A DNA stretch of 62,203 nt from positions 4,884 to 67,086 of the forward strand of contig MQRK01247947.1 of assembly GCA_001938485.1 (NCBI GenBank), given 5' to 3'. Below the pieces are notes generated by a model. It was not told the DNA's origin and made no database searches. It worked only from the letters and a program-made list of their open reading frames with translations. The translations under genes were made by a program, and so were the position numbers. The DNA is from Girardia tigrina. Taxonomy: Eukaryota. Numbering within the stretch: the stretch's first letter is position 1; each line of letters begins with the position of its first letter. This document shows, piece by piece, positions 3,635 through 46,232 of the stretch.

Positions 3635-4671
3635 CTAAATTTGTATAAACGGATGATTCAACACTTCTTCCGTGGTGATTCTTTTATCCGGATCAACAAC
3701 AAAAATTTTAGAAATCTAAATTAAAATTTTTAATATTATAATTATTGGTAACAATGTATAAAATACCAGATCTAATGCTTGTTGAGACAACTTTCCATAA
3801 TCTTTCACTTTAATCGAGTATCTTCCTTCTATGATGTCCGCGTACGTATGTTCTATTTCAGTGCGTTCGTATGGAAAGTAACCTAAAAGCAAGAAAAACA
3901 TAACGACCCCAGCAGACCAAACGTCTGTCGGTTTGCCAAACAAATGTGTTTTATGATTCTGTATTACATCCACCATTTCCGGTGAAAGATACATAGGTGT
4001 TCCCCTCACATCTAAATGTTATTATTGTCTAGAGATATCATTATCACAGTAAAAGCTTACATTTCCGTTCGTAAAGATCGTCGTTGCGAACCGACACTTC
4101 AAAGTCGATCACTTTTATGTTGTCTTCATCATCAAGTAAAATGTTCTCTAACTTTATATCTGCGTGAATTATGTCTATCGAATGCATAAAATTTATTGCC
4201 TCGAATAACTGGTGGGTGATTTGTTTAGTTCGAAGTTCTGAAAATTGTCTATTGTTGCGACCGTAGGTTGCTAAGTTTCCATTTTTACAACTATGTTAAA
4301 CAGAATTAGTATCATGAATTGCAAAAGCTACTTACAAATCCATGATCATGTAAATCCTATCTTTAGTTTCGAAACTTGTGTAAACATTAATAATGTAAGG
4401 ATGACTAAAGCAAAGTTTCAACATAATATATTCGTTGCGTGAATTCGAGATTGTGCGTTTTTTAGTATATTTATCTCCTCGTATATCGGTTATTTTAACT
4501 GCGTATTGTTTCTATTTCATTAATATAAAATTTATTTTATAAATGTGAAATACTCACGTTAGTCGAAATTTCAGTACACTTGTATACCGTTTTAGAACTG
4601 CTTATGCCGATCAGATCACCACAAGTATATCTTGCATTAAATTGGTTTTGTACTTTAGAATTCTTGAACAT
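3635..4671 (-). CDS. Ser/Thr kinase paralog K1 (CAMK-like, DFE/non-RD), 281 aa; exons 4671-4558, 4511-4336, 4290-4061, 4011-3767, 3715-3635
   Basis: Manual splicing at GT-AG introns (46, 45, 49, 51 nt) gives an open frame with YAVK, RNE, HADIKLEN, DFE, GTPMYLSPE, DVWSAG, KRIT...HPF. Confidence 0.9.
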
Positions 4672-5605
4672 TTTAATAATTAAATTTATTTATTTCTTTC
4701 GAATATAATTATATCCTAATTAATTTATTTATATAAAGATATATTATGTAATCGATATTATATAATTGGGATTTTTAGAATATTATTTTTCCGGATTCTC
4801 TTTTATAATTGCTAAATTGTTAATGAAAATAATTAAGTTACTTATTCCAATGAAAATTTTTCATGAGAGAAATTAAAATAATGAATTTCTAAAAATGCCT
4901 AAAATAATCATGAGACCATTAAATTAACTGAGACGACGAGGAAATATAACCGAGTGTTGTTTTAATAACTCGTTGTAAGCGTAAATTTTTTACAAATAAA
5001 TATATTTCAGTACCCCAACTATACCTCCTCTTGGATTACATGGGATACAATTTGAAATATTTGTTGGAATAATTGTTTTGAAACCAATCATTTTAAAATA
5101 TAAACAATTTGGTTTGATGTCGATCGATGAAAGTTTTGTGTAGAGATATTGTAAAGATTATTGTGATAATAATAGAATTTATGAAAATAATATTAATGCA
5201 CTTAATAAACCCTACTATTACGCACAAAGTTTAGATCATGAGCCAAATAACTCATTTAGAATGAAGTAAGGAAAGACAAATATAATTTCTATTTTCAGTC
5301 AGTACGTCATATGTTGAGTATATTTGATCTTATTATTTCCATTTTTATCGGTTCTCTTTCCAGCATGTGACTTAGGTTTCTAAGATTATTTTTAAGAAGT
5401 CAGGTTGTTAAAAACATACGTCACTGTATCTTTCAAATCCTTTTTGAGGCATATTTCTGATCTCTTAAAAATCTTTTTAAATAATTATACATGCAAATAA
5501 TCAAATTAAATTTAAATTTAAAAAGAAATATCAAATTAAATTTTATTAACGAAGTTAAGTATCAAAGACTTTTAGGCTGGTAAATATCGTCCAGATTTCG
5601 CTTAA

Positions 5606-5838
5606 CCCGAATGGGGCCACCGTCCTTTTAAAAGAACACTGCTCAAATATTTTTTTACATCAATTTGACGACTCAGCAACAGATGGCATTAGGTGCAATA
5701 GTCTTTGTATATATGAGTCATGAGTTTGAACTAATCAGTTTATTTTTTAATGTAGAACAAGTTATTTAGATATAATAAACCAGAATTAATATCAAAAATT
5801 CCTTTTTTTTAAAGGAAATAGTTTCGGCCCCATTAGGG
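5606..5838. mobile_element. piggyBac-type MITE (233 bp)
   Basis: TTAA|CCCGAATGGGGCC...GGCCCCATTAGGG|TTAA: 13-bp terminal inverted repeat (TIR, 1 mismatch) and TTAA TSD. Confidence 0.75.
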
Positions 5839-6979
5839 TTAATATTGAGAATTAATAAGATTTTTTCACCAATATCAATCGAGGAAATTATTGGTGTCTT
5901 ATAACAATTAGAATTTCGATAAAATTAGCCAGCAATTAGTCTAATTATTTAAACCCCAATAGACAAGCTAATTCCTAAGAAATTTACATAAATTTACGAG
6001 GAAACTATTGATTTTTTTTACTGTATTACATCGAATCTTTAATCCGGTGCGTAAACTATAAATATTTGTTGTGTATAAAAAAATCTGTTATTATTCATAA
6101 GTTGTTCTTTCAATTTTGTTCCACATCATAATTTATGATACCAGATTGATATTTAAACTATTGGTCGCGCTGCGATTACTTTGGACCCATTTTTTTGAAC
6201 CCATTTGTTAAAATAAAATCAATATTTTTAAATAATTTAATTAAAATAATTAATAAGGAAAACTAATTAAAAATAAAAATTAAATTAAAAATTAATTTAA
6301 TTAAATAAAATATATAAATATATATATATAAATAAGGGAATATAAAATCATCACGTTCATATGGTTTTGTGATGACGCACATACCATATGAATTCCGCTT
6401 TTTAAAAGAGTATTCTCAACTTTGAGACAATCCAATTCATTCTTTATTGTCTCTATTTTCGATGATTCTTTCGGGATCCACCAATTCCGAATCGTAATCT
6501 CGACATTGATTAAAAATCAAATGCACAACACTGGCCAGACAAATATTCGTGCTCATGATTATCAATTTGTGCCAAGTCAACAAAATAAAATTCGATTACC
6601 AATCTCTATGATAATTTATCAGAATCAATTTCCAACCGATAATTAAAATTCCGATTTCACAAAGACAAAGACATTGAATTGAAAAACGTTCATTAAATAT
6701 CGATTAATGAATTTTGAAATGTTACCAACAATTGTGAGCCTCATTTTTGATATTTATGTGTGTGATCTGTGTGTAATGTATGCAAATGTGTCATTGGAGT
6801 GAAATGTTTGAGCCAATGAGATGGGTGTGTGTGTTGGTGTTGATTTGTGAATTGTGATTCACAATTAACAATTCTCAATTAAAAAAAATGGATTTGAAAT
6901 GTGAATATAATTCACAATTTGTTTAAAAATAAAAAGTTTTGAATTTTGTAGCTGTTTTCCTTTTTTTTTTGAATTGATA

Positions 6980-8580
6980 ATGCGCAATGGCAAAACCACT
7001 TTTCAAATGGAGTGGATCATGATGCTGGGGATTGAGTTTCGATCACTTGAATGTTTAAACGAAACTCTCAGAGCTTTTTTGATATCATATTTTGAAACTT
7101 TGGACAATTTTTGCNNNNNNNNNNNNNNNNNNNNNNNNNNNNNNNNNNNNAATGAATTGATTGAGAAAGTTGAGAATTTGGTGGCGAATGATAAAGAACA
7201 CATCCGATTTCGATTTCTTTTGCTCACCTATAGAAATTGTACTTTTAATATTTCTGTCAAAAATAAGTTCTTTAAGAATCAGTTGCGTAATTTCCTCTAC
7301 ATGTGGCAAACAGAGGAAATAACAGATTCGTATACTTTTTTGCGTATTTTGTCGAGAAATATGACGGTTTTCGAGAAACGAGTCATGTCAGCTGTCGCGT
7401 CATATATTCTTATTTTTTCATCAAAAGAAGATTCTGTGGAGTTACCAAGAAAGCAGACATTTGATATGAATTTTTTGAAGGATATATTGGATTCTGTGGA
7501 AAATTGCGATTACATCTCACTGAGGAGAATGATGGGTGACTTGTGGTACTACCCGGCTTCATGGGCCGATTGTAAGGAGATCAATCTTTTGAAAAGAATA
7601 AAAAATTGGGAAATACAAGAAGCAAATGTCACGGCTGAAATCTCTGAGAATACCCTGGTGAATGAAAACAGTTCGGATGTATCCGCATGTGGAGATGCGT
7701 CGATCAGTGTCTCTATTCTAGAGACGACAGTTCCTAATCTCAATATCTGTGCAAATAATAAATCTAGAAAGCGTTTGGACTACTCGATTATTCCAGATAG
7801 TCCATTGCCTTCAAAAGCTATACCTTGTCCGGATAAAAAAGATAAAAATATTTCCTCCAACATCAATGATAGAACCATTGATTTTTCATGTGAAAACTTT
7901 GACAGTCCATTAAGAAAGAATAATTCTTGTATACTGAATCAAGCTGTGATTCTTGAATCACCCAAAACAATGTCCGACTTAGATGATTCTTCTTATGTCT
8001 TCAAAACACCTCAGAAACCGGTCAGGTTGGCCGTAAACAAATCGAATGTGAATGATATATCTTATATCTGTTCACCTATTGTACGCCAACGATTTAAAGC
8101 GATGTCTAATTCTAGCAATTCTGACATTGACCAAACAATTTTTGGTGATTTTCATGTAGACAATCACAGTTATGAGAATGAATCTGACGCAATTAGTTTC
8201 CTTAATTCATCAATGCTGACAGAAGTATCGAGCTTATGCTTTCAAAAATACAAATGCCTTAAAGTACTCGGAGAAGGAGGATATAGCAAGGTTTTTGAAG
8301 CTATCAAATTAAGAACCTCTGCTGAGATACAACAACTATAGTGATTATCGATTTGCTACAATAACTATGGAACTCATCTGGATTCTCATGGTCACCCTAT
8401 CAACCTAGGCATGCGAGGAAAATGGTGGCACAAATCTGGTCTAGTAAAATATTTGATGAATATCTAACTGTGTCTTAGCATATTCCACCTATTTTGTCGA
8501 AATTAAAAGCTAATGACTTGATTAACAAGTCATCTAATTGGTTTGTTAAGCATGTTCGTACAAGCGAATACTTTTTGTAA
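6980..8580 (+). pseudogene. Large intronless ORF ending in a kinase N-lobe start, followed by a kinase C-terminal relic; Bub1/Mps1-like (tentative)
   Basis: The ~450-aa ORF has an SP/TP-rich middle, then YKCLKVLGEGGYSKVFEAIK and a stop at 8341. A downstream broken frame reads WSPYQPRHARKMVAQIWSSKIFDEYL..IPPILSKLK, resembling a Bub1 C-lobe end. The kinase core is missing, and the ORF spans an N gap. Confidence 0.45.
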
Positions 8581-10095: not shown

Positions 10096-10393
10096 ACTCT
10101 TGATAAAATTTCTTAAACCTAGTCTAAATGTGCAAAGTGATTCGTCCAATCATATTAGAGTATTTTGACGTAACACACTGTGACGTAATGGTCATCTNNN
10201 NNNNNNNNNNNNNNNNNNNNNNNNNNNNNNNNNNNNNNNNNNNNNNNNNNNNNNNNNNNNNNNNNNNNNNNNNNNNNNNNNNNNNNNNNNNNNNNNNNNN
10301 NNNNNNNNNNNNNNNNNNNNNNNNNNNNNNNNNNNNNNNNNNNNNNNNNNNNNNNNNNNNNNNNNNNNNNNNNNNNNNNNNNNNNNNNNNNNN

Positions 10394-11575
10394 GAATCTA
10401 TAGCTTGAACCCATCTATGGGCAAGTTGTGCGATCCCGCTGTGGTACCAATCCTTGTTCTTAGAAGCGAAGAACTGGTGACACCCGTTTTCGACCTCGGC
10501 CAGATTATTGAAACTGCGACCACGAAGAAAGTGTGCCATAAAGCGGAAAAGGTGATAGTCGGATGGCGCAAGATCCGGACTATACGCTGGGTGTGGAAAA
10601 AGTTCAAAGGCGTCGAGATTTTTGATTTTTTCCTTTGTTTGTTTGGCGGTGTGCGGTTTTACATTGTCCTGTTGTAGAAGAACTCGCTTTCGATTGATCA
10701 AAGCGGGGTATTTCTCGTCAAGTGCCGCATACATTCGGTCAAGTTGGGCTCAGTAAAGATCAGCGTCGATGGTACGACCATTTAAAACTATCTCGAAGTG
10801 AATCGCGCCTTAGAAATTCCACCAAACACACAAAAGTGCCTTCCTCGAGAAACGATCTCATTTCGCTACAGGTTTCGCCGTTTGTCCGGGGTCCAACCAT
10901 TGATTTTGTTGGTCTGGATTACTGAAGTAAACCCACTTTTCATTGCAAGTTACAATTCGACGGATGAAACGATTATCGTGCGATTTTTCAAGCAATTTTT
11001 GACAAGTTTCGAAACGCTTTTCGGTTTGAATTTGTGTCAAGTCATGAGGCACTTCTCAACGTCGTCTATTGACCTTACCCAGAGCGTAAAGGTATCGTAC
11101 AATGGATGTTTGTTGACTATCGAGTTCGGCCGACAATCTGCGAGTACTTATTGACGGATTTGTCTGGACGGCTTCACGAATTACTCCGAAATCTACGGTG
11201 ATAGGTCGGTCTGAATGTGCATTGTCTCCGAGGTCAATGTCACCTTCATTGAACCTTTTGAACCAATTTTGTGCAGTACGATTTGAGACCACATTATTGC
11301 CTTCAACTTCGCATATCTTCTTTGTTGCTGCAGTTACGTTTAAGCCCTGTTTCAAGTAATGGCGTGAAATAACACGAATTTCAACATTTCCATGATTTTT
11401 CTAAAAGACCATAAAAATTATATTAACAACTGATTAGAAGTTTTAATATATATTGTGATAGAGCAATTCAAGAGCTTTAAAAATATATAACACATGTATA
11501 TAAAATATCTTTATTTAGTAATAAGAAACAATTGAACAAAAAGGCATAGAAAATAAGAAAAGACTTTGGTTCACC

Positions 11576-11579: not shown

Positions 11580-11614
<35 letters not shown>

Positions 11615-11664
11615 NNNNNNNNNNNNNNNNNNNNNNNNNNNNNNNNNNNNNNNNNNNNNNNNNN

Positions 11665-11715
<51 letters not shown>

Positions 11716-11919: not shown

Positions 11920-13100
11920 AGTTATGTGTGATTGATTAATTATTGAATATTGTTTGTTTAAATAATATATAGTTTTTGTACGCGGTTTAAAATATAGTTT
12001 TGATTTGACTTTGAAAATGGATTTTAAAGAAACCAAAAACGTAACTGGCGACCACGCCGAAAATATCAATGCAATTACGAGAAGCCAACAAAGAAATATT
12101 TTGCTTGCGTCGCTGCCGAAGAAGACAAAGCGAAAAAATGTTCAATCCAGAACGAAAGAAATTCTATGCCCTCGGAAGACCCAAAACTATTTTGATCAGA
12201 TAGTGGTAGATGTTGCCCACATGGACAAAGTTTCAACAAAAAAATTTTTGGTAGTCATTATACACCGATTTAGTAAGTTAGTTAGTTTGAAAGCGGTTTC
12301 GAAGCAAGATGAGCGCACTATATTTAAATGTATTTTGCACAATTGGATCTATAAATTCGGCAAGCCATCTAATATTCTGACAGACCGGGGTAGACAATTC
12401 CAGAGTGCATTTATGAGCCAGAGTTTGGAACAATTACAGATAAAACAAGAATTTAGCTCACCAAATCAACATCAGTCGAATGGTTTAGTGGAACGGGTGA
12501 TAAGAACAGTAAGAGATATGATCGCAACATCATTGAAATGTACAGAGAAAAATTGGGATGAATTGTTGCCTCGGATTGAGTTCAGTCTCAATGCAACTGT
12601 GCAAGATTCGACTAAATTCTCACCTTTCGAGATCGTTTACGGCCGGAAAATAAAATCCATTCGGTGTCTGGAACAAAAACTTTCGACAAGGATCAGATCA
12701 CTGAAGAGGTTCGAGACAATGGAGATGCGGCAGCTGAGAAAATGATGATGTACCAAAAAGAAAGTCGAGGGAAGAGATATTTCAGAGAGGGAGAGATGGT
12801 ACTCGTCCGGGTGGATCCTACAAAGAAAAACAAGAACGATTTCCAATACGAAGCACCGTACAAGATCCTCAGATTCATTTCGCCACACCAGGTTGAAATT
12901 CAATTTTCAAATGAGGTGAAAAGAAGGCGCATTGAATGGCTCAAACGCTGGCCGGGTTTTTGAAGAGGGGGAGAGTTATGTGTGATTGATTAATTATTAA
13001 ATATTGTTTGTTTAAATAATATATAGTTTTTGTACGCAGTTTAAAATATAGTTTTGATTTGATTTTGAAAATGGATTTTAAAGAAACCAAAAACGTAACT
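11920..13100 (+). mobile_element. Miniature gypsy-type LTR element carrying only integrase
   Basis: 127-bp LTRs (11920-12046, 12974-13100; 3 differences; AGTTA...TAACT ends). Primer-binding site (PBS) TGGCGACCAC, PPT gaagagggggag, TSD ATATA. Integrase D-D-E in VVDVAH / LTDRG / NGLVER, with a frameshift before the C-terminal module. Confidence 0.92.
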
Positions 13101-13320: not shown

Positions 13321-14347
13321 ATGTCCAATAATTCGACTGTACAAAACCAATTTAATGCAAGATATACTTGTGGTGATCTGATCGGTAAAAGCAGATTAAA
13401 AACAGTATACAAGTGTACAGAAATTTCGACTAACGTGAGTATTTGACAATTAAAAATAATTTTTATACTAATTAAATAGAAACAATTCGCAGTAAAGGTA
13501 GCCGCCTTACATGGAGATAGAAATACTATAATAAATATAATATTGAATTCACGCAACGAATATCATATATTAAAACTTTGTCTTGCTCATCCTTACATTA
13601 TTAATGTTTACGAATATTTTGAAACTGCAGATAAGATTTACATGGTCATGGATGTGTAAGTAGCTTTTGTAATTCTTCATGTTACTAATTCCGTTTAATA
13701 TAGTTGTAAAAACGGAGACTTGACATTCTACGGACAATTTTCAGAAATTCGAACTAAACGAATCATGCGTCAGCTATTTGAAGCAATAAAGTTTATGCAT
13801 TCGATAGACATAATTCACGCAGATATAAAGTTAGAGAACATTTTACTGGATGATGAAGGCAACATAAAAGTGATCGACTTTGAATTGTCGGTTCGCAACG
13901 ACGATCTTAACGAACGGAAATGTAAGCTTTTACTGTGATAATGATATCTCTGGACAATAATAACATTTAGATGTGAGGGGAACACCTATATATATTTCAC
14001 CGGAAATGGCGGATGTATTACAGAATCATAAAACACATTTGTTTGGCAAACCGACAGACGTTTGGTCTGCTGGAGTCGTTATGTTTTTCTTGCTTTTAGG
14101 TTACTTTCCATACGAACGCACTGAAATAGAACAAACGTACGCGGACATCATGGAAGGAAGATACTCGATTAAAGTGAAAGATTATGGAAAGTTGTCTCAA
14201 CAAGCATTAGATCTGGTATTTTATACATTATTACCAATAATTATAATATTAAAATTTTCAATTTAGATTTCTAAAATTTTTATTGTTGATCCGGATAAAA
14301 GAATCACCGCTGAAGAAGTGTTGAATCATCCGTTTTTACAAATTTAG
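13321..14347 (+). CDS. Kinase paralog K2, 277 aa; exons 13321-13434, 13480-13655, 13704-13921, 13971-14215, 14267-14347
   Basis: Spliced open frame (introns 45, 48, 49, 51 nt) with FAVK, RNE, HADIKLEN, DFE, SPE, DVWSAG. 12-nt in-frame deletion in exon 3 relative to K1/K3. Confidence 0.9.
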
Positions 14348-15083: not shown

Positions 15084-15875
15084 TTAGGTTGGTCGAAAAA
15101 TAATGACGGTTTTTGAGCTTCATACTTTGTTTATCTACTTTGATATGTATATAAGTTTAAATAAATTAGTGTTAGATATTATTTGAAATATTATGTCTAG
15201 CTGTATATTCCTCTAGCCATTATTAACATATTGCTGTTATTTTTTAGAATATTTACGGTGCTAAATTAATAATGGAAAACATTAAAAATTGAGCAATTTT
15301 CTAGTACGAATTTAAACTGGGTCGTAAAGCGGCGTTATGGTGACAGTTTGGTGGTGTGATGCTGGAATCATCCACTGTAGTTTCTTGAATCCAGGGGAAA
15401 CAATCACAGTGGAGAGGTATTGTCATGAAATTGATGAAATGCATAAAAAAATGAAAACCCTTTGTCCGGGATTGGTCAATCGAAAAAGTCCCATTCTTCT
15501 TCATGATAATGCTAGACCTCATATTTCAAAAGTGACTCTTCAAAAGCTTAATGAGTTGGGCTATGAAACCCTGCTTCATCCACCAGATTCACCAGACCTC
15601 TCGCCAACAGACTTCTACTTTTTCAGGCATTTGTACAACTTCCTACGTGAAAAAATTTTCAAAAACCAAAATGATGCTCAAAATGCCTTCCAAGAATTCA
15701 TCGCTTCGAGAACCGATGTATTTTATGCTGATAGAATAAAACAACTTGTTTCTCATTGGCAAAAATGTATTGATGCCAACGGTTCATACTTTGATTAATA
15801 AACTTTTGTTTCTGTGAATTTGCACGTCTTTGAAGTTTGTGTCCCAAAACCGCCATTATTTTTCGACCAACCCAT
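15084..15875 (+). mobile_element. Internally deleted mariner element (792 bp)
   Basis: ~30-bp TIRs ttaggttggtcgaaaaataatg.../cattatttttcgaccaaccc, TA TSD, HDNARPH and DSPDLSPTD. The HTH-to-first-D region is deleted at ~15335. Confidence 0.92.
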
Positions 15876-16185: not shown

Positions 16186-16199
16186 CAAAATATAACTAG

Positions 16200-17800: not shown

Positions 17801-17807
17801 TTGGTAT

Positions 17808-18413
17808 TCAACACAATCGTTTGATTTCACTCTCGAGTTGTTGAAAACTTTGAGTGTCGTTTATGTTTATATCGGGATTGAGTCGAGAAATATCATACAG
17901 AACAACGCGGCATTCTTTAATTAATGAATGNNNNNNNNNNNNNNNNNNNNNNNNNNNNNNNNNNNNNNNNNNNNNNNNNNNNNNNNNNNNNNNNNNNNNN
18001 NNNNNNNNNNNNNNAACAGTCACATCATCTGCAATAACCTCCTCATTCATGTCAATCGATTCACTGTTCACTGCCGGCACTACCGAATAATCATCGTCCG
18101 TCAAATCGGTTACAATATCACTGAGAACGATTCTTTTATGTCCGATTTTCTTTTCGTGATCGACTTTTCCTTTCGGAATCGATAAAATATCAAAAATATT
18201 TTCACTATCACTATCTATATCATTATGATCGATATTCGCCGTTCGACCATCGCCACTCCTATTCCCGATCTCATCAATCAATTCTATCAATATCTCCCTG
18301 AGAACGCTCTCCGCCTCTGACTCTCTACATGATGTCAATCGCTCCATCGGATAACTGATTGATTCAAAAAAAATTTCAAAACAGAAAAACTTTATTTTGC
18401 CACGTTTTAACAA
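17808..18413 (-). CDS. Hypothetical acidic protein upstream of the polymerase relic (possibly part of the same element)
   Basis: ~200-codon D/E-rich ORF spanning an N gap, on the same strand as the polymerase. No recognised motif. Confidence 0.3.
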   Translation of the reverse strand: MLKRGKIKFFCFEIFFESISYPMERLTSCRESEAESVLREILIELIDEIGNRSGDGRTANIDHNDIDSDSENIFDILSIPKGKVDHEKKIGHKRIVLSDIVTDLTDDDYSVVPAVNSESIDMNEEVIADDVTVXXXXXXXXXXXXXXXXXXXXXXXXXXXXHSLIKECRVVLYDISRLNPDININDTQSFQQLESEIKRLC

Positions 18414-27987: not shown

Positions 27988-28403
27988 TATTAACAACATC
28001 AATATGAGGATTACAACATTTATTAATATTACAAGCACATTCACTATTTGACATCTCTCTTGATCAATATTTTTTCTGCCTTCAAACTAATTAAATTCAA
28101 TAAATGAAAATCTGTTAATAGCAATTATTAATTATAAAGAATCTAATTGGTTAAAATTAAATCTAAACATTTTTTTAAAAAATAGAACATTAAATTAATA
28201 TATTAAAATTTTCAATTAGATTAAAAATAAATAATACATGCAATAATTATTTAAAAATCTTTTTACTTTAAAATTAAATAAAATTATTTTTAATTAGTAT
28301 GAATCAAAGAAAATATCAATCATCCATCTGTGTAGGAGAGGCACAATCCGAATCAACATTCTACATGCACAATATCAACACATAATTCAAAACATTCCTC
28401 ACA
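27988..28403 (-). mobile_element. Solo LTR (416 bp)
   Basis: TGTGAGG...GTTAATA on the minus strand; perfect TSD TACGT; closely similar to 30341-30757 and 51744-52155. Confidence 0.85.
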
Positions 28404-28761: not shown

Positions 28762-29801
28762 CTAAATTTGTAAAAACGGATGATTCAACACTTCTTCCGC
28801 GGTGATTCTTTTTTCCGGATCAACAACAAATATTTTAGAAATCTAAATTAAAATTTTTAATATTATAATTATTGGTAATAATGTTTAAAATACCAGATCT
28901 AATGCTTGTTGAGACAACTTTCCATAATCTTTCACTTTAATCGAGTATCTTCCTTCCATGATGTCCGCGTACGTATGTTCTATTTCAGTGCGTTGGTATG
29001 GAAAGTAACCTAAAAGCAAGAAAAACATAACGACCCCAGCAGACCAAACGTCTGTCGGTTTGCCAAATATATATGTTTGATAATTCTGCATTTTATCCGC
29101 CATTTCCGGTGAAAGATACATAGGTGTTCCCCTCACAACTAAATTTTATTATTGTCTAGAGATATCATTATCACAGTAAATGCTTACATTTTCGGTCGTA
29201 AAGATCGTCGTTGCGAACAGACAGTTCAAAGTCGATCACTTTTATGTTGTCTTCATCGTCCAGTAAAATATTCTCCAATTTTATATCTGCGTGAATTATG
29301 TCTATCGAATGCATAAAATTTATTGCCTCGAATAATTGGCGGGTGATTTGTTTAGTTCGAAGTTCTGAAAATTGTCCATTGTTGCGACCGTAGGTTGCCA
29401 AGTCTCCATTTTTACAACTATGTTAAACGGAATTAGTAACATGAAGAATTACAAAAGCTACTTACACATCCATGACCATGTAAATCTTATCTGCAGTTTC
29501 AAAATATTCGTAAACATTAATAATGTAAGGATGAGCAAGACAAAGTTTCAACATATTATATTCAATGCGTGAATTCGAGATTATGTTTTTTATAGTATTT
29601 CTATTTCCTTGTATGGCGGTTACCTTTACTGCGAATTGTTTCTATTTAATTAATATAAAATTTATTTTTTAAATGTGGAATACTCACGTTAGTCGAAATT
29701 TCTGTACACGTGTTTACCGTTTTTGAACTGCTTATGCCGATCAGATCACCACAAGTATATCTTGCATTAAATTGGTTTTGTACTGTAGAATTGTTGGACA
29801 T
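28762..29801 (-). CDS. Kinase paralog K3, 281 aa; exons 29801-29688, 29641-29466, 29417-29188, 29138-28894, 28842-28762
   Basis: Spliced open frame (introns 46, 48, 49, 51 nt) with FAVK, RIE, HADIKLEN, DFE, SPE. Confidence 0.9.
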
Positions 29802-30340: not shown

Positions 30341-30757
30341 TGTGAGGAATGTTTTGAATTATGTGTTGATATTGTGCATGTTGTATGTTGATTCGGATTG
30401 TGCCTCTCCTACACAGATGGATGATTGATATTTTCTTTGATTCTTACTAATTAAAAATAATTTATTTTTAATTTTAAAGTAAAAAGATTTAAAATAATTT
30501 TTTGTTTTTAATGTTTTGTTTTTTAATGTAATTTAAAATTTTAATATATTAATTTAATATGTTCTTTTTAAAAAAATGTTTAGATTTAATTTTAACCAAT
30601 TAGATTCTTTATAATTAATAATTTTTATTAACCGATTTTCATTTATTGAAAATAAATAGTATGAACTCAGAAATATATTGATCAAGAAAGATATCAAATA
30701 GTGAATGCGCTTTTGATATTAATAAATGCTGTAAAGTTCATATTGATGTTGTTAATA
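30341..30757 (+). mobile_element. Solo LTR (417 bp)
   Basis: TGTGAGG...GTTAATA; TSD GCAAT/GCAGT. Confidence 0.82.
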
Positions 30758-30959
30758 GCAGTATACACAACTTTACAATTTATTAAGGCCCTTTTACATT
30801 AATTAAGAACGCTAGGTATTTTATTTAAATCATAATTTCGGAAATATAGAATTTTCGAATAAAAAAATTAAGAAGTAAGATTTATTTTATAAATTTATTA
30901 ATTTACATTTACTTTACAATTTATCTATCTTCGTCAATGTCAATTTTCATAAGGGATGA

Positions 30960-31467: not shown

Positions 31468-32097
31468 ATGCCTAAGATTTTGAATAAAATATTCGCAAAA
31501 GACCGAGGAGCAGTGTTTGAAAAAGATAATTTTCACAGCGATATACGAATTCTCTTCCGTTCATTTTGTAACAAGACTGTTGATCATATATTATGTCAAA
31601 TCATCACAGATCATCTCAACAGCGCCAAGCATCAAGAAGTTACGCTGAAAAGTCAGGCAGATACTTCATCGAGTGGGCAAGCTAAGAAGCAGTGTACGGT
31701 GACTACATTTTTTGAACAGCAAGTCACTGCTAAAGCGCAGAGTGATAAAGTAGCTCATGATTTTCTGGGCATACTCGTGAACGCTAACATCCACATTAAA
31801 AAAAACCAAGCATCCGATGGTCTACCAATTTTTATCCACACATGTAAAAGGTGGAAATACTGTATTTAAATCGGATTCTCTACGCCTTTACTCTCTGCCT
31901 GCCTTGATTGAGGAGCATGATGCAAAGTTCGGTAGATGAATGAATCGTAACACATTCCTCATCATTACCACTGATGAAAGGATAGATTTCAAAAAATGCC
32001 CCGTCTTTAACATACTATTCCAGGTACTGTGCCCCGCAGACCAACTTACAGGCGGCTTTGATGTACTGTCCAAACCATTGCTAGTTAAAACGGTTTA
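31468..32097 (+). pseudogene. CGGBP1-like/hAT transposase N-terminal relic
   Basis: LFRSFCNKTVDH..I.DHLNSAKH zinc finger, NANI, TDERID..VFNIL; fused to a gypsy RT at ~32098. Confidence 0.6.
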
Positions 32098-34791
32098 CAT
32101 CGACATTCCCAGAATTGATGATATTTTACAATTCACAAATAAAAAGAAAGTATTTGCCACAATTGATTTGGAAAAGGTGTATTTTCAGATACCCATAGCC
32201 CCGGAAGACATTGAAAAAACGGCAGTCAGCACCCTTTTTGGCATGTTCGAGTTTTTATACATGACTTTCAGTCTTCTTAATGCCCCTGCAACCTTCCAGA
32301 GAACGATAGACAACGTTCTTCGAGCGTATCCGTTTGCAGTACCCAATTTGGATGACATACTCATCGTCTCAGACTCGGAGGAAGAACACACCAACCAAGT
32401 TGTAGAAATTTTGTCGGCTTTACAACGGGCTAATCTATCAATCAATCGGAAAAAAATGTCGATTTACTATGAAAGAAGTGGAATTTCTCGGATACGCAAT
32501 CAGTACGTATATGGCTTACTATTCAAGTGCATCATCACTTTTTTGATATTCTGATTTCTTCTGTCTCTAAAATCGATGTGCATTTTGTGTAAATTTGCAC
32601 ATTATGCTAATTATAGGAAAATGTTATCAATATATGATATTTCTAATTGCAAATTCAGATAGAGAATTAAAATGTGCACTAAACACATGATATCGATTTT
32701 TGACACTAGCACTTTTAAAAATTTCATGTATTGAGTTTTGCACTTTTGCACATGTGCAACATAAAAAGAACTGTGATAGTACATTTGAAATGTGCGGCAC
32801 AACGTGCACTATCTATTAGCACTTTAAAAGTATCGATTAACACACTTGTGCGCTGTGCAGCGATCGATTAGCACTTTTTTCTACGGTTGCCATGGCAAGG
32901 GTAACGGTTGCTATGTATACGGTAACCGTTATCATGGTTACAAGCGCCTTGAATCACTGTATCCGTTGCTGATGAAAAACGTCCTTGGTTACCGTTGTTA
33001 TGGGAGCCGAAACCGTTACTAGGGGCCCGGGAACCAATCAGAAGTGTTTCCAAGGTACCGGGGACCAATCGGAACCCTTGCTAGGGTGATCGGAACCGTT
33101 GCTATGGTAACCGTGACCGCTGCTAAGGTGATCGCGACCGTTGCTATGGTAACCGGACCCGTTGTCATGGCAACGGGTGACGGCACCACCCCGGGGGGTC
33201 AATTATCGATTGAGTGCAAACATACAGTTTCCCCCTACTGGCATGGTTGAAATGACATTCGATAACGAAGGAAGCGTTTCACGAAACTCAATCCGCGTCA
33301 ATGACGGTCATGGAACTCTCCTCATATGATTATTCTCAACCACTCATTCTGCGGTTGGACGCTTCCGGAACAGCGGTGGGAGCGGAACTCGAACAAAATG
33401 GTAAACCTTTATATTTTTTAGTAGACAGTTATAGGCATGCGAAAAACGCTACAGTACGTACGATCGAGATTTACTGGCCATATATAAAGCCTGCAAACAT
33501 TTCCGGCCCCTTCTGGAAGCTATTATTACGACAGTTTTTACAGATCACCGGCTTCTCTCGCACAACCAACCAAAATATCCAATAAACCATCACTGGAGAA
33601 CCTTCAGTTCATATCAGAACTAAACTGTACCATTGAATACTGCCCAGGTCACACAAACACAGTGGCCGATTCGTTATCTAGAAACAAAATCATGCAAATG
33701 GATGCCTCACAAAGCAACGCATTTCCTTGGCCGACGCAAGTCATTTCAGCCAAACAACGAACAGAGTTAAAGAAGGATTCGGACGAATTATGGATGAAGA
33801 ATAATAAGTTAATATTACCGCCGTCACTTCAGAAAGAAGCTTTTCAGATGCACCATCAGGGTGGTCATCCAGGCATCAAAAGTACCATAGAACTTATCGC
33901 TCGATCGTATACATGGCATCAAATGACGAATGACATTCAGAAGTAGTGTCAGAAATGCCAAGAATGTGCGAAAGCTAAAATTCATCAATACATTAAATCA
34001 AAGATCATGCAACTTCCAGCAGCGAGCAGATTCAACGCAATTCACATGGATATCATAGTACCGCTTCCAGTTATAAACGGTAAGGTATTTATATTAACCG
34101 TAATAGATCGTCAGACATCGTGGCTAGAGATAATACCGGTCAAGAACATAACAGCTGAAACAGTAGTAAGAGCCTTGGTCGAAAACTGGATATCTAGATT
34201 TGGTATTCCGGTCGAAATAGTGACCGACAGGGCCACTCAGTTCACTACTTCTTTCTTCTAGGAATTAAGCAAACAGTTAGGCATTAAATCCATTCAAACG
34301 ACGGCATACCCCCCACAATCCAACTGAAAGGTGGAAGGACTTCATCGCACCATGAAAGCGACAATTATGGCAATAACGCTACAAAACAAAAAATATGGAT
34401 TCACGAACTGCTCTCGGTGGCGTTTTGCTTACAGAATTGCTCGGATGCCAATGGACTGTCACCCACCTAAAAAGTAAACGGGGCTAATCTCTCCATGCCC
34501 GGGGCTATATTCAAAGTGTCGATGGAGTGCATAGGAAACATTGCGGTAAGTGGAAAAATAGTCAAACGAATATTTCAGAACGACGTAAAAATTCCGAAAT
34601 CAATCGAGGACTGTGAGTTCGTGTATATAAGGAAACATACCGAAGTCTCGCTCGAAACCCCCTATTCTGAACCGCATAAGGTAAAGCAGAAGTGTCGCAA
34701 ATACTTCATCATGCATGACTAGACATCAGTATCAGTTGATCGACTCAAACTGGATTTCATTTTCACCCATAGTGTTTCTGAGAGGGGAGAA
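32098..34791 (+). pseudogene. Gypsy pol relic (RT, RNase H, integrase) with PPT
   Basis: IPRIDD, FATIDL..YFQIP, NAPATFQR, NLDDIL, LDASG, ADSLSR, H..GHPG..C..C, HMDI, TDRATQF; PPT gagaggggaga at ~34780. Confidence 0.9.
32505..33212. repeat. 708-bp insert in the RT, with TGCAC-rich repeats, a 21-bp X-box array and a CCCCGGGGGG palindrome
   Basis: The RT frame (EFLGYAIS|ANI) is interrupted and AGT is repeated at both junctions. 14-mers such as GTTGCTATGGTAAC occur at 32886, 32907, 32928, 33077, 33098, 33119, 33140 and 33161. Confidence 0.75.
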
Positions 34792-36059: not shown

Positions 36060-37176
36060 TAATTCCTTGCTCTAAATGCACATTTCATTGGAGAGAATAG
36101 ATATTAGTCAAATGGGGAGAGATCAGGGGAGTATGGTAGATGTGGTAGTACAGTGAATTCAGCTTGTCCTTGGTCTTAGCAGCCGTATGCGGACAAGCAT
36201 TATCGTGGAGATAATGAACATTGTGGTTTCCTCCATTGAGAAACCGTCTGCGCCTCTGCTGTACGGCGATAATGAGACAATCCAGCTGAGTACAGTATAC
36301 ATTGATTGTAGCTTTTGGAGGTAAGATATCTAACAAGAGCAGTCCTTTACTGTCCCAAAAGACGGAGGCGAGATGCTTTCGATTTATCAGTCTTAGTACC
36401 GGTGTTGCAAGTGGGTTTTCATCTTATTTTCTCCATGATCTATTGTTGAAAGCACCTTCGTTGTTTCAGTAAACCCGTATCTTATCACAGGTGATGATTT
36501 GGGACAGGAAATCATTCCAGTGATAACTATCCAAAAGCTGTTGACAAATTCTTTTGCGATTATTCTTGTTCTATTGTGTTAGAGCGTGTGGTAGCCAGCA
36601 ATTTTCCAGGTATCGGTATCCCATTGCATTCAAGTGCCGGCACACTGTGATTTTATCCTGATCCATTCCCTCTGCAATGTTCCTCGTTGTTGCACGTTTG
36701 TCTTCAGTCAGAAACTCGATTATCTTCTCGTCTATGTCAAGAGAGGGCCGCCCTTCGCGGACTTGATCGTCTGTGTTAAGGTTGTTTTCACGAAAATTTG
36801 AAATCCAACTTTTATATGTTTTCTTTGAGACTGTTCCAACCACAAGGGCCGTGGTAATTTTGTCAGTCATTTGTGAGGGTTTTAAATCACTTTTCCAGCA
36901 ATAGCAAAATTAATTTACGAATATCAGAGCTATTAAAATCCCTTAGGTTGATGGAAATGTGCGAAATTTATGCAAATGCTATTATTTTATTAAAACAAAA
37001 ATTCATTTAGTACAGAGAAGAAAATTTTTTTGCCATAAGTAGATCACAAATGCTACTTTATCTAATCCAAATTTTATTAGGGGTTGCAAATATGTAAGAA
37101 TTATTTATGTGATGCAAGGATATCAGCAGTTAACATAGATATATGTGTGCAAAAAAACTTATGAGGCAACCCTATA
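36060..37176 (-). mobile_element. mariner element, decayed and 3'-truncated
   Basis: REGRP, WLPHALT, IITCD, LHDNACPH, PYSPDLSP; TIR tatagggttgcctcataag. Confidence 0.85.
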
Positions 37177-38487: not shown

Positions 38488-39514
38488 ATGTCTAATTTTA
38501 CTCATAATTCCGACTCACCAAAACAGTTTCATGAAAGATATCGTTTAGATAAAATAATGGCAAATAGTGATTTAACCATGGTATATTCGTGTATAGAAAT
38601 GTCGACTAATGTATGTTTTTTAAAAGTTATCATTGTAATAAACCTAAGTTTACTAAATAGAAAAAATTTGCGGTAAAGATATATAAATTACAAGGCGAAG
38701 AAAACATGCGAAATGGAATGATCTCAAACTCCAGATCAGAATATCAAATTACAAAGTTTTGCTCAGATCATCCTTATATCATTAATGTTTATGAATATAT
38801 GGAAAACGAAGAATATGTGTATTTAATCATGGATTTGTGAGTAAATATTATATTTCTTGCCTTTTACTATATTGTTTAACATAGTTGCAAAAACGGAGAC
38901 CTGCTATCCCACATTAAAATATTCAGAAAATTACCAGAAAGTCAATTTAAAAGAATCCTTCGCCAGTTATTCGAAGCGATACGTTTCCTCCACGCAAATG
39001 ACATAATTCACGCGGATATCAAGTTGGAAAACATTTTAATTGATAACAGAAACAATATAAAGATAATCGACTTTGAGTTGTCGCTTCACAATGACGATTT
39101 GATCAAACGAAAAAGTAGGATTTTATATTTGACAAATAAAATTTTGTAACACATTATATTTAGTTGTAAGAGGGACTTCCGATTATCTTTCACCGGAAAT
39201 GGCGAATAAATTAATTAATCGTAACAGACAGATATTTGGTCTGCTGGGGTCGTCATGTTTTTCTTGATTGTAGATTACTTTCCGTTCGAAGGAAACACAC
39301 ATGAAAAAATGTACGCAGATATTATAGTTGGGATATATTTGATCAAAGATCGTTTAAGGATGTCTCCTGAAGCATTAGACTTGGTATTTGATATATTATT
39401 TCATATTATGATGATATTAAAAACTACATTTAGATTTCTAAAATATTTGTTGTTGATCCTAATAAAAGAATCTCAGCAGATGAAACGTTGAGTCATCCAT
39501 TTTTAAAGAATTAG
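38488..39514 (+). pseudogene. Kinase paralog K4 with a 19-nt frameshifting deletion in exon 4; exons 38488-38610, 38661-38836, 38885-39114, 39164-39383, 39434-39514
   Basis: Same intron positions; FAVK, RSE, HADIKLEN, DFE, SPE. The frame jumps from QIFG to TDIWSAG at 39228-39240. Confidence 0.85.
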
Positions 39515-40200: not shown

Positions 40201-42108
40201 GTCAAGACGTAAAAATTGATATTGCTATCCAGAACCAGTAGTCGCGATTATTTTTTGTAACAGAATTGAATTTCGTGATTAATCTCTAAGAAAATATGAT
40301 ATATTATTCGATTTCGAATATCCATTATCCTATTTCATTTGATTATAATCAGTGATAATAATCAATCAATTTCAATTTTTCCAGATTGAAAATACTCTAA
40401 ACTAAATCTCCAGATCTCGCATCCTTGGAATATTAAATTCCTAAACTCAAAATCCATAAAATCGAACTAGATTAATGTTTTCTGCAATCAGTTGTCTCTT
40501 TTCTTCACCTCAACTGATCTGAGGTATATTCCTATTTCACTTTCATTATTTATTGGGATTACTATACCTTGTTATTGTATTTACCGATAATTTAAATAAT
40601 TTAGATCTAATTTCTTTTCGTTTGTTATATATTCCCTAGCGTTAAATCAAGAAAACGTTTACTATATCGTGTTAAATACGTTTTAACATTCATATAAAAA
40701 AATAGTATCGATATATGCGAGACTAGATCTTTTTAATTAGTTGCCTCATATTTTCTAAGGAAATCACTGACAATCAGACTACAGGATGAAAAATTACTAT
40801 CATAGAATATGTCGTGACCGCAAAAAAATGCAAAGGAAAAAAGCGCACAGGAAAAAAGCACATGTGGAAAAAACCTCATAGGTATAAAAGCGCACATGGA
40901 AAAAAACGTATTTTTATATAATCAATGTAATTTAATGAAAACAAATGCAAACAAAAATAAGTAATATATCATTAAGTCTAAGATTTATTCAGAACCGATA
41001 GAAAAAATTAATGAACAGAATTATAAACTACTGTAGATTAGCTATTGTCCTTAAATAAGATAACTTGTCCTCTGTTTCATGATATTTTTCCACTGAACTG
41101 GCTATAATCGTAGAGTATTCTGTATTTTCTATTAGTTGGTTCCAGTTGATTAGCTTGTGAGTTTACTAATATTAGCTTATGGTACGCTAAATCTCTTCTC
41201 AATCCATCGAAAAGAATCCACACACTCGGATGACTTGAATGAAATATGGAGTTAAGGGTATTGTGAAACTCTTTGCAACAATTAGTTGTCTTTGGAGATT
41301 GATCAAGAGCTGCATCTTAGTGATTTCATGTTGTAATGTGGAATTTAGGAAATCTTCCGGTGGTCCCTTGCATATTTGTCGAACAAAAGAGCTCAGTACG
41401 TCGTTAAATCTGTCTGTCTTGCATTTCTTCTAATGGCACGAACGACAATGTACCCAATGATTTTAACTTTAATTTTGTGCCAATGCTTGACTCGAATTCC
41501 GATTTTAGACTGACTGCATTAATTTTCCTTATAATGCTTTGGCTCAAATAAAAATAACATTCTTTAATTTCAGCCTCTGGAAAAGTACATCTTTCAGCAT
41601 TCATGCAACCATTCTTGAAATCTAAAAGTATCTTTTCAGGCGCCATATTTAGAACCAATTTTTTCAAAATATTAAACATCCCCAAGAATGTTGCTTCATT
41701 CTTCTTTGTCAGCAGTGCATAAACACATGGTGGATACGAATTTCCTAATTTGACATGCACAGTGTAACGTTGATAAAACATAGTTGGTGCCTTGTCAAAA
41801 ATTCCGTCACCAAAGAGTGTGGTTTGGCTTAATTGGCCCAGTAACTCTCGATCTCCTAATACTAAAATTCGATATGAATCATATAATCCCGAGTCGTGTA
41901 ATACTAAGTTCGAGTATTTTCAGGAATTGAAAAATCTGTTGTGGATGGATTCGGCAAGTGTTTTTTTCTCGGTGATTTAGAAGAGTTCTCGCAAGAGAAG
42001 TGGTGGTGCTAGAGCGGGTGCAGCATGGTGGCTGCGGCGTGTTGGTATTAAGGAATGATTTGCGAAACGCGGGGGGCTCAAATTCAACGTAATCTTACTG
42101 CCATCATC

Positions 42109-42708
42109 CAATATAATTTCTCCTTCCTCATCAACGCCGAATTCAATCTTTATATCAATTAATTGACAATTTAAACTACTCCAAATCTTTTCTGCAATTT
42201 CAAAAATCGCGATTGTCATGTCCGACATTACTTGAATATCTCTCTCTGTTATAATCCGTTGCTTCAACCCGATCTTCAGTTCAAACGCAACTAACAGCTC
42301 ATATAAACATCGCGGATCGTGATTGGCATCATCTTTGAAAAACGTTTCTCGTTTAACCAGACAAATTTTATAACCTTCCGGAACACCAATATTTCTCTTT
42401 AGAAAAGATCCCGTAGTGATCCTTCTCCTGACCCACTCAATAGGAATCATATAACATCTTTTAGCAACAAAACTTGTATCGGAATGTTGCTTAATAAAAT
42501 GACTTTTTATATCAGAAAAAAACAACAACTCGAAAATATGAGTCACCGTTGTCGTACTAATCGCCGCTTTCCCTTTCATCGAGTGGCTCTTCATACCGTC
42601 ACCGACGGTTATTTTGTCTTTGGACACAATCAAACACAAATCCTCAAAATCCGGCATTTCACAAACGATCTTCGTCTTTCCCTCTATTATTGCTTTGTCG
42701 AAATTCAT
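42109..42708 (-). pseudogene. PAICS: PAICS/ADE2 SAICAR-synthetase domain, 5' 200 codons, truncated before the ADVID motif
   Basis: EGKTK, SKDKIT, GKAAIS, MIPIEWV.RR..TGSFLKRN.GV.EGY, FFKDDANHDP, IFEI.EK.W, DIKIEFGVD match animal PAICS. Intronless. Confidence 0.9.
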
Positions 42709-43230: not shown

Positions 43231-44234
43231 TTCCCCCCCCTTTTAAATCAAACAGGAAGATTACTTTTGAAAATAAGCAAATGCATTCATGCTTACCTCT
43301 GTCAATGTCTCTCCAATAACATTGCAGAAGGTAGCATTTATTGCAACCATGGCTTCTCTCGTTTGGCTTTTAGCGAAGTTTACTTCAGCTTTTTGTGGAC
43401 AGGAATCATGACATTGACTGCTTGAATCTTGTATAATTTTCTTGTTTTTTGTCTTCATAAGAGAATAGCACTTAGTCTGTCGATTTTTGTGGCACCTCCA
43501 TGTATCTATTCCATTTCTTGTGCAAAAATGTAAGTATTCAAAACCACAATAAATAAGAACTTGTTTTCCTTTCTGACTAATTGAAAACTCCATTGTCTAT
43601 AAATTTAAAAATGAATTAAAAAAACAATTATTTTACTATAATTAAACATTTTTAAATTTCTGTTTATAAACTAAATGTGTTTAAACAAAATTAATTAATA
43701 TTTTTGTTTTTAAAATTATTTAGAAGTATTTTCAGTTATAAAAATTGTTAATAACTTTTTAAAAATTAACTTTAAATAATTATTTAGAAAATATGTTTTA
43801 CTTATAAAAATTCTTTTTAATAAAATTCTGATTTTAAATATTTTAGATAATTTTCATTTTAAAATATTTAAAAATAAAAATTTTAAAATATTTAAAAATT
43901 AAAAATATATATAATAATATCACCACATCCTAACAAATTGAATTTTATTTTTCGTTTTACTTTTAGAAATGCGTTATTTTCCATGTGTGTTTTTATACCT
44001 ATGCGGTTTTTTTCCGTGTGCGCTGTCATCCTTGTGCGTAATTTTCCATGTGCGCATTTTTCCGCGTGTGCGTTTTTCCGTAAACCGGAAGAAACAGAGT
44101 TTCCGGATTTTCGATTTATCAAAAATAAATTCTTTCAGTTTCTCTATTATAAAGCATGAAACCTTATATTTTTAGCTGAAATACATTTCATCTTTATTTA
44201 TTATTAATAGTTAACTAATAACTAATAGTTTTGA

Positions 44235-44790
44235 GGCTGATATATTACGATTGCCAAGAACAAGTAATTCAGTTGAAGAGTGGAAACGTGGTTTTAACCA
44301 ACTCATTGGATCTAGTCATCCAAAAATTTAGAAATTTATAGATGATCTCAGGAAAGAAAAAAGTATTAATGAATTCGAAATTGAGCAAAACATTACTGGT
44401 CAATGCTTCCTCTGGTACCTCTTACAGTTTATCGTGATAAAGCTCTACGAATAGAGGATATAGTTAATGACTATGAGAATCGCTACATATTGGATTGTTT
44501 AAAAGGCATCGCTCAGAACTTGAAGTGTAAATAATTTTTGTACAATTTTTTAAAATCGATAATTACAAGAACAATTATTTTTACTTCATGTTTATCACTA
44601 CTTATACCATCATTTTGATTGAAAGATTTTAATAAATTTGAATTTCATTTCAAGTATGAAAATGTCATATGATTATTTGATCAACTAAATCTACTTTTGC
44701 CTTTTATGTTTTCGCTATTTTTTTCTTTCACCTTTTCTTCTTTCGCTTCTTCAATTTCTCTCATTTTGTTTTTGCCTTTTTGACATTTAA
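44235..44790 (+). mobile_element. Second MULE: transposase C-terminus and terminal repeats
   Basis: LPRTSNSVEEW..FN..GSSHP.I..FI..LRKE, followed by ttcgc/ttttt repeats. Confidence 0.65.
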
Positions 44791-45207
44791 GTATGAAAAA
44801 CTACAGCCATTTTTATTATAAAAAGTCTTCAAATCTAAAGTGAAAAGATTTTTGAAACATTAATTTCTACGGTGATTTATTCCTTTATTTATTACTTGTC
44901 ATTTACATTTTATGCAGATACTAATAAATAATTATAATAATAAATCTCGATTAAAATAATCATTATAAAAAGTGCGCGTTTTCCGTAAAATGCGCCTTAT
45001 ATATTCGTATTTCATGTAGCACTTGAGATAGACCATTAATTATATTACTTGACAACTTCTTTTGTATTGTGACGTATTTAAACACAAAAGATTTTATACT
45101 TTATATTCTTTTTGGAGATAAAAATACAAAAAACATTTTAACAATTATTTATTAACTTTAACAATAATTTGGTAAATAAATTATCGGATCAAAGCCAGTT
45201 TGGCTTT

Positions 45208-46232
45208 TTAAGCTGTGAAAAAAGGATGACTTAAAGCATCTTTTGCTGATGTTCTTTTAATGGGATCCACAATAAGAATTTCAGAAATCTAAAATCAATA
45301 ATGAAATTTATAAAAACTTGGAATATTATTTTAAATACCAGATTCAGTGCTTCTGAGGATATGCCTACCAAATCTTTATCTTTAATCACATATTTCCCCT
45401 CACTAATAAGCTTAAGTAGCTCATCGTTAGAATCGTGACAGAAAGGAAAGTATCCCATCAAGCAAGCATACATGATAACACCTGCCGACCAAATGTCCGT
45501 CGCCTTGTCAACCATCGCTTGAGCATTTTTTTCTAAATATTTTTTTGCCATTTCTGGTGACATATAATCGAGAGTTCCGCAAATCACTTAAAAAAATACA
45601 ATCAAATCTATCCATTATCAAACCAAAATCTAACTTTTTCTTCTATTGAAATCATCTTGATGAACTGTTAATTCAAAATCGATAACTTTAATATCATCTT
45701 GATCATCCAACATTATATTGTCCAGTTTCATATCGAGGTGAATGTACCCTTTACCATGGATGAAACTGAGAGCATCAAATAACTGGTACATGATTGTTTT
45801 TACTCGGCTTTCCGGTAACCGAGTTAGTCTTAGTAAATGGTCAAATAAATTGCCTTTTCTAAAACTTGACCAAGCAAAGTGTTAAATTGTTGTATATGTA
45901 TATCAGTTACTCACTAATCCATTACTAAATGTATATTGTTAATGTTTTCGAAGTAATCATGCACATTTATTATGTAAGGGTGATCTGAAAAGACTTTCAA
46001 AGCATTGTACTCCGATTTTGCCTTTAATGACGTCCAATTTTTCATCGAGCTTGAAACTTCGAATGTTTTAACAACATAGTCTTTCTATAAAATAAATATA
46101 TTATATATATTAACGCACATAGCAGCTCTAGGTTACGTTGGACGCAATCTCCGTGCATAAGAATATTGAAACCATTGTACCTTTATATAATCGTTTGTCT
46201 AGTTTATATTTTCTAGAAAAAGATTTATCCAT
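45208..46232 (-). CDS. Kinase paralog K5 (most divergent), 274 aa; exons 46232-46137, 46084-45915, 45864-45635, 45586-45339, 45288-45208
   Basis: Spliced open frame (introns 52, 50, 48, 50 nt) with YVVK, KSE, HLDMKLDN, DFE, CGTLDYMSPE, DIWSAG, HPFF. Confidence 0.88.

Follow-up and report, generated by a model that had tools for sequence, protein, structure and literature searches.

Five related protein kinase genes, which we call K1 to K5, are present in a 62,203-nt stretch of Girardia tigrina DNA (GenBank assembly GCA_001938485.1, contig MQRK01247947.1, positions 4,884 to 67,086), and this whole stretch is referred to here as the window. Each gene is interrupted by four GT-AG introns of 45-52 nt, which were located by an exhaustive search for introns of 35-70 nt in which the best-consensus set was kept, and which occupy identical codon positions with phases 0/2/1/0 in all five copies (Table 1). 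Exons 2-5 match Pfam Pkinase, and splicing is predicted to yield open frames of 281 aa for K1, 277 aa for K2, 281 aa for K3 and 274 aa for K5. K2 lacks 4 aa just after the hinge, and K5 is the most divergent copy, with 40-45% identity to the other four. Both a degenerate pattern and per-exon profiles return exactly five kinase copies in the window, and a sixth copy was rejected by the per-exon profile scan. The window contains six runs of N, but none of them falls inside any of K1-K5, so that the reading frames are independent of gaps; the gaps touch only the spacing and linkage of K1, K2 and K3, and K3, K4 and K5 share the gap-free segment 20681-49421. A preliminary description of this DNA had proposed five copies that splice through four short introns at identical positions into proteins of about 275-280 aa. 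The copy number and the introns are borne out, and the protein size holds for K1, K2, K3 and K5 (274-281 aa) but not for K4, which is put out of frame by a 19-nt deletion.

For K4, the exhaustive intron search yields no full-length four-intron model. Its exon 4 is 19 nt shorter than that of K1-3, the difference lying between short direct repeats, and the spliced sequence of 830 nt is out of frame. Rescue by an extra intron was rejected, as the candidates either delete core kinase elements or require a 26-nt GC-AG intron. Since the frame is still open downstream of the deletion, K4 appears to be either a pseudogene of recent origin or the result of an assembly slip. Also missing from K4 is a C-lobe Gly that all six other sequences in the exon-4 alignment retain.

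Table 1. Kinase genes K1-K5 and nearby assembly gaps, in window coordinates
Feature	Position	Strand	Remarks
K1 gene	3635..4671	-	intact, 281 aa; introns 46/45/49/51 nt
K1 exons	4558-4671, 4336-4511, 4061-4290, 3767-4011, 3635-3715	-	
K1 DFE codons	4098..4106	-	
K1-K2 gaps	7115-7150, 10198-10393, 11615-11664		
K2 gene	13321..14347	+	intact, 277 aa; introns 45/48/49/51 nt
K2 exons	13321-13434, 13480-13655, 13704-13921, 13971-14215, 14267-14347	+	
K2 DFE codons	13876..13884	+	
K2-K3 gaps	17931-18014, 20058-20680		
K3 gene	28762..29801	-	intact, 281 aa; introns 46/48/49/51 nt
K3 exons	29688-29801, 29466-29641, 29188-29417, 28894-29138, 28762-28842	-	
K3 DFE codons	29225..29233	-	
K4 gene	38488..39514	+	frameshifted as assembled; introns 50/48/49/50 nt
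K4 exons	38488-38610, 38661-38836, 38885-39114, 39164-39383, 39434-39514	+	
K4 DFE codons	39069..39077	+	
K4 19-nt deletion	39222..39238 (approximate site)	+	exon 4, frame broken
K5 gene	45208..46232	-	intact, 274 aa; introns 52/50/48/50 nt
K5 exons	46137-46232, 45915-46084, 45635-45864, 45339-45586, 45208-45288	-	
K5 DFE codons	45672..45680	-	

The encoded proteins combine a complete set of catalytic residues with unusual motifs around them. The beta3 Lys, the alphaC Glu, the Asp, Lys and Asn of the catalytic loop and the Mg-binding Asp are invariant in K1-K5, whereas the DFG motif reads DFE in all five and the HRD motif reads HAD in K1-4 and HLD in K5. In all complete members, a stop codon follows directly after the kinase domain. 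These features were recognised in the preliminary description and are retained here, including the lack of a regulatory tail, but three of its statements had to be modified. The GxGxxG loop is indeed degenerate in all copies, although a single Gly remains in K1-3 (the first) and in K5 (the second), none being left in K4; the gamma subunit (PhKγ) of phosphorylase kinase, a glycogen-control enzyme, is itself without the third glycine of the loop. The activation segment, which had been called acidic, is mixed in charge and not net acidic, and contains an Arg-Lys pair that is invariant except in the divergent member L005 and one shifted fragment. Finally, of the supposedly conserved DD in this segment, only the second Asp is invariant family-wide; moreover, DD also occurs in fluke PhKγ and is thus no innovation of the family.

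The family is not limited to the window, and the same pattern is seen among the more distant members described below. DFE is found in 10 of the 10 members of the exon-3 alignment, which come from several genomes; the catalytic Asp, Lys and Asn and the Mg-binding Asp are likewise invariant in all ten, and the GT of the P+1 loop is kept in every member covering that region. Only 24% of the columns are invariant among the seven near-complete members, yet these include all six catalytic residues and the P+1 GT. Across members that are 30-58% identical the catalytic residues are unchanged, several of them with synonymous codon changes. Among the residues fixed in the family but different in PhKγ are the DFE Glu and the activation-loop Arg-Lys pair, and the position of PhKγ Glu182 is occupied by Y, F, M, I, L or S, which are uncharged and mostly hydrophobic. 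Since the residue after the His of the HRD motif varies (A, L, Q, M, F or G) while DFE is invariant, the Arg would appear to have been lost by relaxed constraint and the DFE Glu to be positively maintained.

The ratio of non-synonymous to synonymous substitution rates (dN/dS) agrees with the earlier proposal that the odd motifs are maintained by purifying selection, against which a ratio near 1 would have spoken. Comparisons of K1-3 with K5 gave values of 0.16-0.21, at a dS that is near saturation, and comparisons with K4 gave 0.32-0.37, so that the deep pairs span 0.16-0.37 with all bootstrap intervals below 1. Among K1-3 the values are 0.35-0.66, and the confidence interval includes 1 for the pairs involving K1. 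K1-K3 look like recent, partly homogenised duplicates under weaker constraint. They are gene-sized duplicates of about 1.4 kb with unrelated flanks and mixed orientation. Haplotype duplication was rejected for them, as the homology ends 140-280 nt beyond the genes and the orientations differ, and a tandem block of 25 kb, to which the distances K1-K3 and K2-K4 seemed to point, was rejected because continuous homology was not found. Silent differences in exon 4 of K1, K2 and K3 number only 0-2 in about 51 sites, whereas the silent divergence (pS) is 0.11-0.31 in exons 2-3 (0.08-0.31 in exons 1-3), which suggests that the 3' half has recently undergone gene conversion among these inverted and direct copies. 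A palindromic, ATCGAT-centred element is located about 70-90 nt upstream of the start codons of K1-K3, with none at K4 or K5. K3 is bracketed by an inverted pair of a repeat of about 420 nt (27981-28403 and 30341-30765, 89% identical), of which a third copy lies at 51744-52156; this pair could have mobilised K3.

Database searches were made exon by exon rather than with joined proteins, and the spliced models were used for frame checks, dN/dS, alignment, tblastn against the window, hidden Markov model (HMM) ranking of fetched domains, and trees. An exon-3 profile run against 1.84 billion representatives, with matches listed down to 77.5 bits and consisting mostly of multi-domain kinases, identified at least four single-domain fragments with the non-RD and DFE motifs. 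A word search with exon 3, which covers only proteins of 42-133 aa and is uninformative on full-length relatives, gave a fifth DFE fragment besides PhKγ and generic kinase fragments, and a metagenome scan added at least one further gene (L006). Five outside members are therefore in the exon-3 alignment and L006 is a sixth, a number that is a lower bound; L004 and L005 are the loci of two of the fragments. L004 (ENA) and L006 (JGI) are complete and tail-less, and they share all four introns with the genes of the window, at lengths of 44-49 nt and in unchanged phase. K1, K2, K3, K5, L004 and L006 all have intact frames and splice sites; in L005, introns 2 and 3 are present and intron 1 is not. 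The outside members, two of which are known by UniParc identifiers only, come from other contigs or proteomes of animal origin. Over exon 3 their identity to K5 is 37-48%, and overall they are 30-47% identical to the proteins of the window. The family is expanded, as had been proposed, but it is not lineage-specific in the sense of being confined to this genome, members with the same introns being found in others. It should be noted that the window's own kinase proteins are not among the entries of the databases searched, that the family appears there only as mis-called single-exon fragments, and that the NCBIfam search was uninformative. Current annotations thus miss the DFE family. Expansions of kinases within single lineages, with odd motifs, have been known before; no description of a eukaryotic DFE kinase family was found in the open-access full text searched, which includes few subscription journals, only papers on bacterial or archaeal kinase-like proteins being matched.

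Several observations point to PhKγ (PHKG1/PHKG2; CAMK group, PHK family) as the parent. The top matches in PDB are PhK, MELK, CDPK, CaMKII and MNK, all of which are Pkinase domains of the CAMK group, in line with the CAMK-like character assigned previously. For exon 3, PhKγ is the best PDB match: it scores 82 bits, the runner-up among single-domain kinases scores 69, and neither CaMKII nor MNK ranks in the top 60. Among the matches listed in the 1.84-billion search, the best full-length single-domain ones are annotated as PhKγ. Introns 2, 3 and 4 agree in codon and phase with introns of the Paragonimus PhKγ gene, intron 1 being family-specific, and the next Paragonimus intron, which opens the regulatory tail, coincides with the stop codon of the family; assuming uniform placement, the chance of this coincidence is about 4e-8. 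Fluke PhKγ has the same DF-to-GT spacing as the family and also its DD and RGT, of which the latter two hint at a flatworm host without proving it. PhKγ resembles the family, too, in having no phosphorylatable Thr at the activation site. The placement by HMM and phylogeny that the preliminary description had suggested was carried out: in a tree of 42 rows the family is monophyletic (99/97) and sister to PhKγ (91/92), the sister placement receives 93/94 in a tree of 20 rows and a FastTree support of 95 with 183 domains, and MSK-like domains form a separate clade in the 42-row tree. Grouping with CaMKI-like kinases was rejected (p-AU 0.023, approximately unbiased test), whereas nesting with fluke PhKγ was not (p-AU 0.059). 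In these trees the K4 frame break was read as X, partial and gappy rows were kept, and few PhKγ sequences were included. Based on these comparisons, we consider it very probable that the family derives from PhKγ, an origin that would explain the missing tail and the DD. The PhKγ match from the mite Halotydeus (L087, 2001-3074) lacks introns, and its C-terminal tail is degenerate, with HRD and DFG kept; it is an independent case of a PhKγ copy losing its regulatory region.

The family nevertheless differs from PhKγ in essential respects: it is without the C-terminal calmodulin-binding/autoinhibitory domain, the tail by which PhKγ docks on the alpha subunit and calmodulin of its alpha/beta/gamma/delta holoenzyme, the HRD Arg and Glu182 are both gone, DFG is replaced by DFE, the glycine loop is degenerate, the catalytic loop contains KLxN where PhKγ has KPEN, the genes are multi-copy, and the identity to PhKγ is only 31-42%. 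It would therefore resemble a tail-less PhKγ that falls outside the PHK family by its lack of the tail and of the Arg-Glu pair. Other known kinases share some of its features. DAPK and MLCK are non-RD kinases that are independent of loop phosphorylation, like the family in being non-RD, but they keep the DFG, the glycine loop and the calmodulin tail, which are absent or degenerate in the family. MNKs are RD kinases with a normal glycine loop. MNK1/2 resemble the family in that they are active CAMK-group kinases with an acidic residue at the DFG Gly, but they are activated by MAPK phosphorylation and contain MNK-specific inserts (PMC3326643), whereas the family has DFE and is without such inserts. 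TRIB1-3 have a degraded glycine loop and a Glu at the position of the DFG Gly (SLE; PMC5382568, PMC4718504); however, their motif is E[S/N]LE, without the Mg-binding Asp, and they have a C-tail with DQxVP, while the family keeps Asp-Phe and is tail-less. ILK, too, combines degeneracy of the glycine loop with a charge at the DFG Gly position but is without catalytic-loop residues that the family keeps, and haspin is active with a modified DFG (PMC4718504) but belongs to another lineage.

Taken together, and judging from the sequences, we lean, at somewhat better than even chances, towards the view that these genes represent an old animal-lineage offshoot of PhKγ that encodes modestly active kinases, which depend neither on calmodulin nor on phosphorylation and have a rewired activation segment. 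Such an offshoot would have originated by DNA-level duplication of a PhKγ gene, followed by the gain of a stop at the end of the kinase exon and by diversification, K1-K3 being recent gene-sized (about 1.4 kb) duplicates within a transposon-rich region. As the predicted protein ends where the PhKγ regulatory-tail exon would begin, it is free of a calmodulin-binding/autoinhibitory segment. In PhKγ, a Glu182-Arg148 ion pair keeps the enzyme active and the calmodulin-binding tail silences it, and the truncated, tail-less domain is constitutively active (PMC10978961). The DFE proteins may similarly use Mg-ATP to phosphorylate Ser/Thr, with no need for Ca2+/calmodulin, a holoenzyme or activation-loop phosphorylation. 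Hydrophobic packing could hold the activation segment in place of Arg148-Glu182, and a new salt bridge may link the DFE Glu with either the fixed Arg/Lys or a basic residue of alphaC. ATP affinity and turnover would probably be lowered by the degenerate glycine loop, control might then be exerted via expression and localisation, and the substrate need not be glycogen phosphorylase. That a kinase can be active without a canonical DFG is exemplified by MNK with DFD (PMC3326643) and haspin with DYT (PMC4718504).

Alternatively, the proteins may be PhKγ-derived nucleotide-binding pseudokinases or scaffolds, comparable to ILK or Tribbles. Retention of the Lys, Glu and Asp would then serve ATP binding or the stability of the fold, and the DFE Glu would lock the protein in a non-catalytic conformation or contribute a surface for binding. 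The glycine loop, the RD Arg and the DFG Gly, all of which are linked to activity, have been lost together, and a number of published observations weigh against activity: few features predict kinase activity as well as an intact Gly-rich loop, Gly52, whose equivalent is lost in K1-4, matters for ATP positioning and its loss lowers the ATP affinity of PKA, and ILK (degenerate loop, DVK) and Tribbles (degraded loop, SLE), which combine a degenerate loop with a non-Gly DFG position, are pseudokinases (PMC4718504); BRAF G596R, in which the DFG Gly is lost, is impaired (PMC4619530); and a non-Gly residue at this position favours DFD-out in MNK (PMC3326643). In the same direction, the beta3 Ala is replaced by the bulkier Val, Ile or Leu in four members (K5, L004, L006 and L005). 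However, the precedents have lost metal-binding or catalytic-loop residues (Asn171 to Ser in ILK, the DFG Asp in TRIB), whereas the catalytic Asp, Lys and Asn and the Mg-binding Asp are unaltered in the ten DFE members, which also have the P+1 GT wherever it is covered, and the three residues by which pseudokinases are commonly defined (beta3 Lys, catalytic Asp and DFG Asp; PMC4718504) are all invariant, so that the proteins fall outside that definition. We therefore regard this alternative as rather unlikely, and real kinase activity seems to us about twice as probable as its absence.

The parentage may also be different, in that the family could stem from another CAMK-group kinase (CaMKII, MNK or the C-terminal domain of MSK), or constitute an ancient sister lineage of PhKγ instead of a derived copy. 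For exon 4, CaMKII (65.5 bits) and MNK1 (62.5) nearly tie with PhK (62.4), exon 2 matches MSK1 best, albeit weakly, MNK is already acidic at the DFG Gly, and in the maximum-likelihood trees the family falls outside the sampled PhKγ clade and is not nested within it. Derivation from PhKγ is further weakened by the insect PhKγ gene having only intron 3 in common, by the intron 2 and 3 sites that CaMKII genes may have too, and by the trees themselves, which have long branches and support values under the starred threshold and include neither animal CaMKII nor animal MNK. Against another parent stand the 13-bit preference of exon 3 for PhK, with CaMKII and MNK missing from the leading matches, the agreement of three introns and the stop position with fluke PhKγ, the rejection of the CaMKI-like grouping but not of the fluke PhKγ nesting, and the separate clade of the MSK-like domains, and we consider such a parent improbable. 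It is less probable still that these genes are merely decaying duplicates with odd motifs that reflect neutral damage. The frameshift and the lost invariant Gly of K4, the deletion in K2, the intervals including 1 for the K1 pairs and the transposon-rich surroundings would fit decay; however, DFE and the non-RD motif in ten of ten members from several genomes at 37-48% identity, the low dN/dS of the deep pairs, and the intact frames and splice sites of six genes appear to largely refute it for the family as a whole.

Within the view of an active PhKγ offshoot, a bolder proposal can be put forward, although only tentatively: the genes may belong to a family that is new to the literature and spans a clade, possibly the flatworms, and whose members are active derivatives of PhKγ free of calmodulin control. 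Their obligatory DFE Glu would be a built-in activator that pairs with the fixed Arg-Lys, replaces the Arg148-Glu182 bridge and compensates for the lost glycine loop. If true, this would be a naturally evolved and testable route to catalysis that dispenses with the Gly loop, the RD Arg and the DFG Gly, and it may reveal a new way to hold a kinase switched on. The glycine loop, the HRD Arg and the DFG Gly serve to predict live kinases, and here a natural family has altered all three while nonetheless retaining every catalytic residue over deep time. As the probable parent PhKγ is very well studied, parent and offshoot can be compared directly with respect to the role of the DFG glycine, substitutions of which are disease alleles (BRAF G596R), and to the rewiring of activation.

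The remainder of the window, which has a G+C content of about 30%, is rich in transposon remnants, and the kinase cluster is surrounded by mariner, gypsy and MULE fragments. Mariner-type transposase fragments are located at 10192-10734, 15337-15798, 36085-36870 and 60085-60528; the pair 15334-15702 and 60160-60528 is 94% identical and inverted relative to each other. Degenerate long terminal repeat retrotransposon pol fragments (integrase, reverse transcriptase) are present at 12005-12963 and 31940-34722, and a 127-nt direct repeat (11920-12046 and 12974-13100) lies immediately upstream of K2. MULE/FLYWCH transposase remnants at 41404-41781 and 43261-43593 flank an intronless 5' half of a PAICS (SAICAR synthetase) gene (41977-42708, minus strand), and 55622-57028 is probably another such remnant. 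The PAICS-like open reading frame (ORF) matches insect and human PAICS best, its closest relatives are intronless environmental contigs (64-65%), and the remainder of the gene is not in the window; it is probably a truncated retrocopy. These best matches mark the window as animal DNA, and the low G+C content, the short introns and the divergence of the PAICS sequence rule out a human source. A long low-complexity ORF at 6974-8341 (plus strand), which spans the 7115-7150 gap, has at its end an intact kinase glycine loop, which we take to be Bub1-like; the kinase domain does not continue downstream, and Pfam gave no match. At 53873-54550 (minus strand), a single-exon ORF of 225 aa contains two HSP20/alpha-crystallin stretches, for which the word search gave no match and PDB no strong match; two-domain small heat-shock proteins are known from flatworms. 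AT-rich tandem repeats with a period of 47-55 nt are found at 47739-48150 and 56005-56257.

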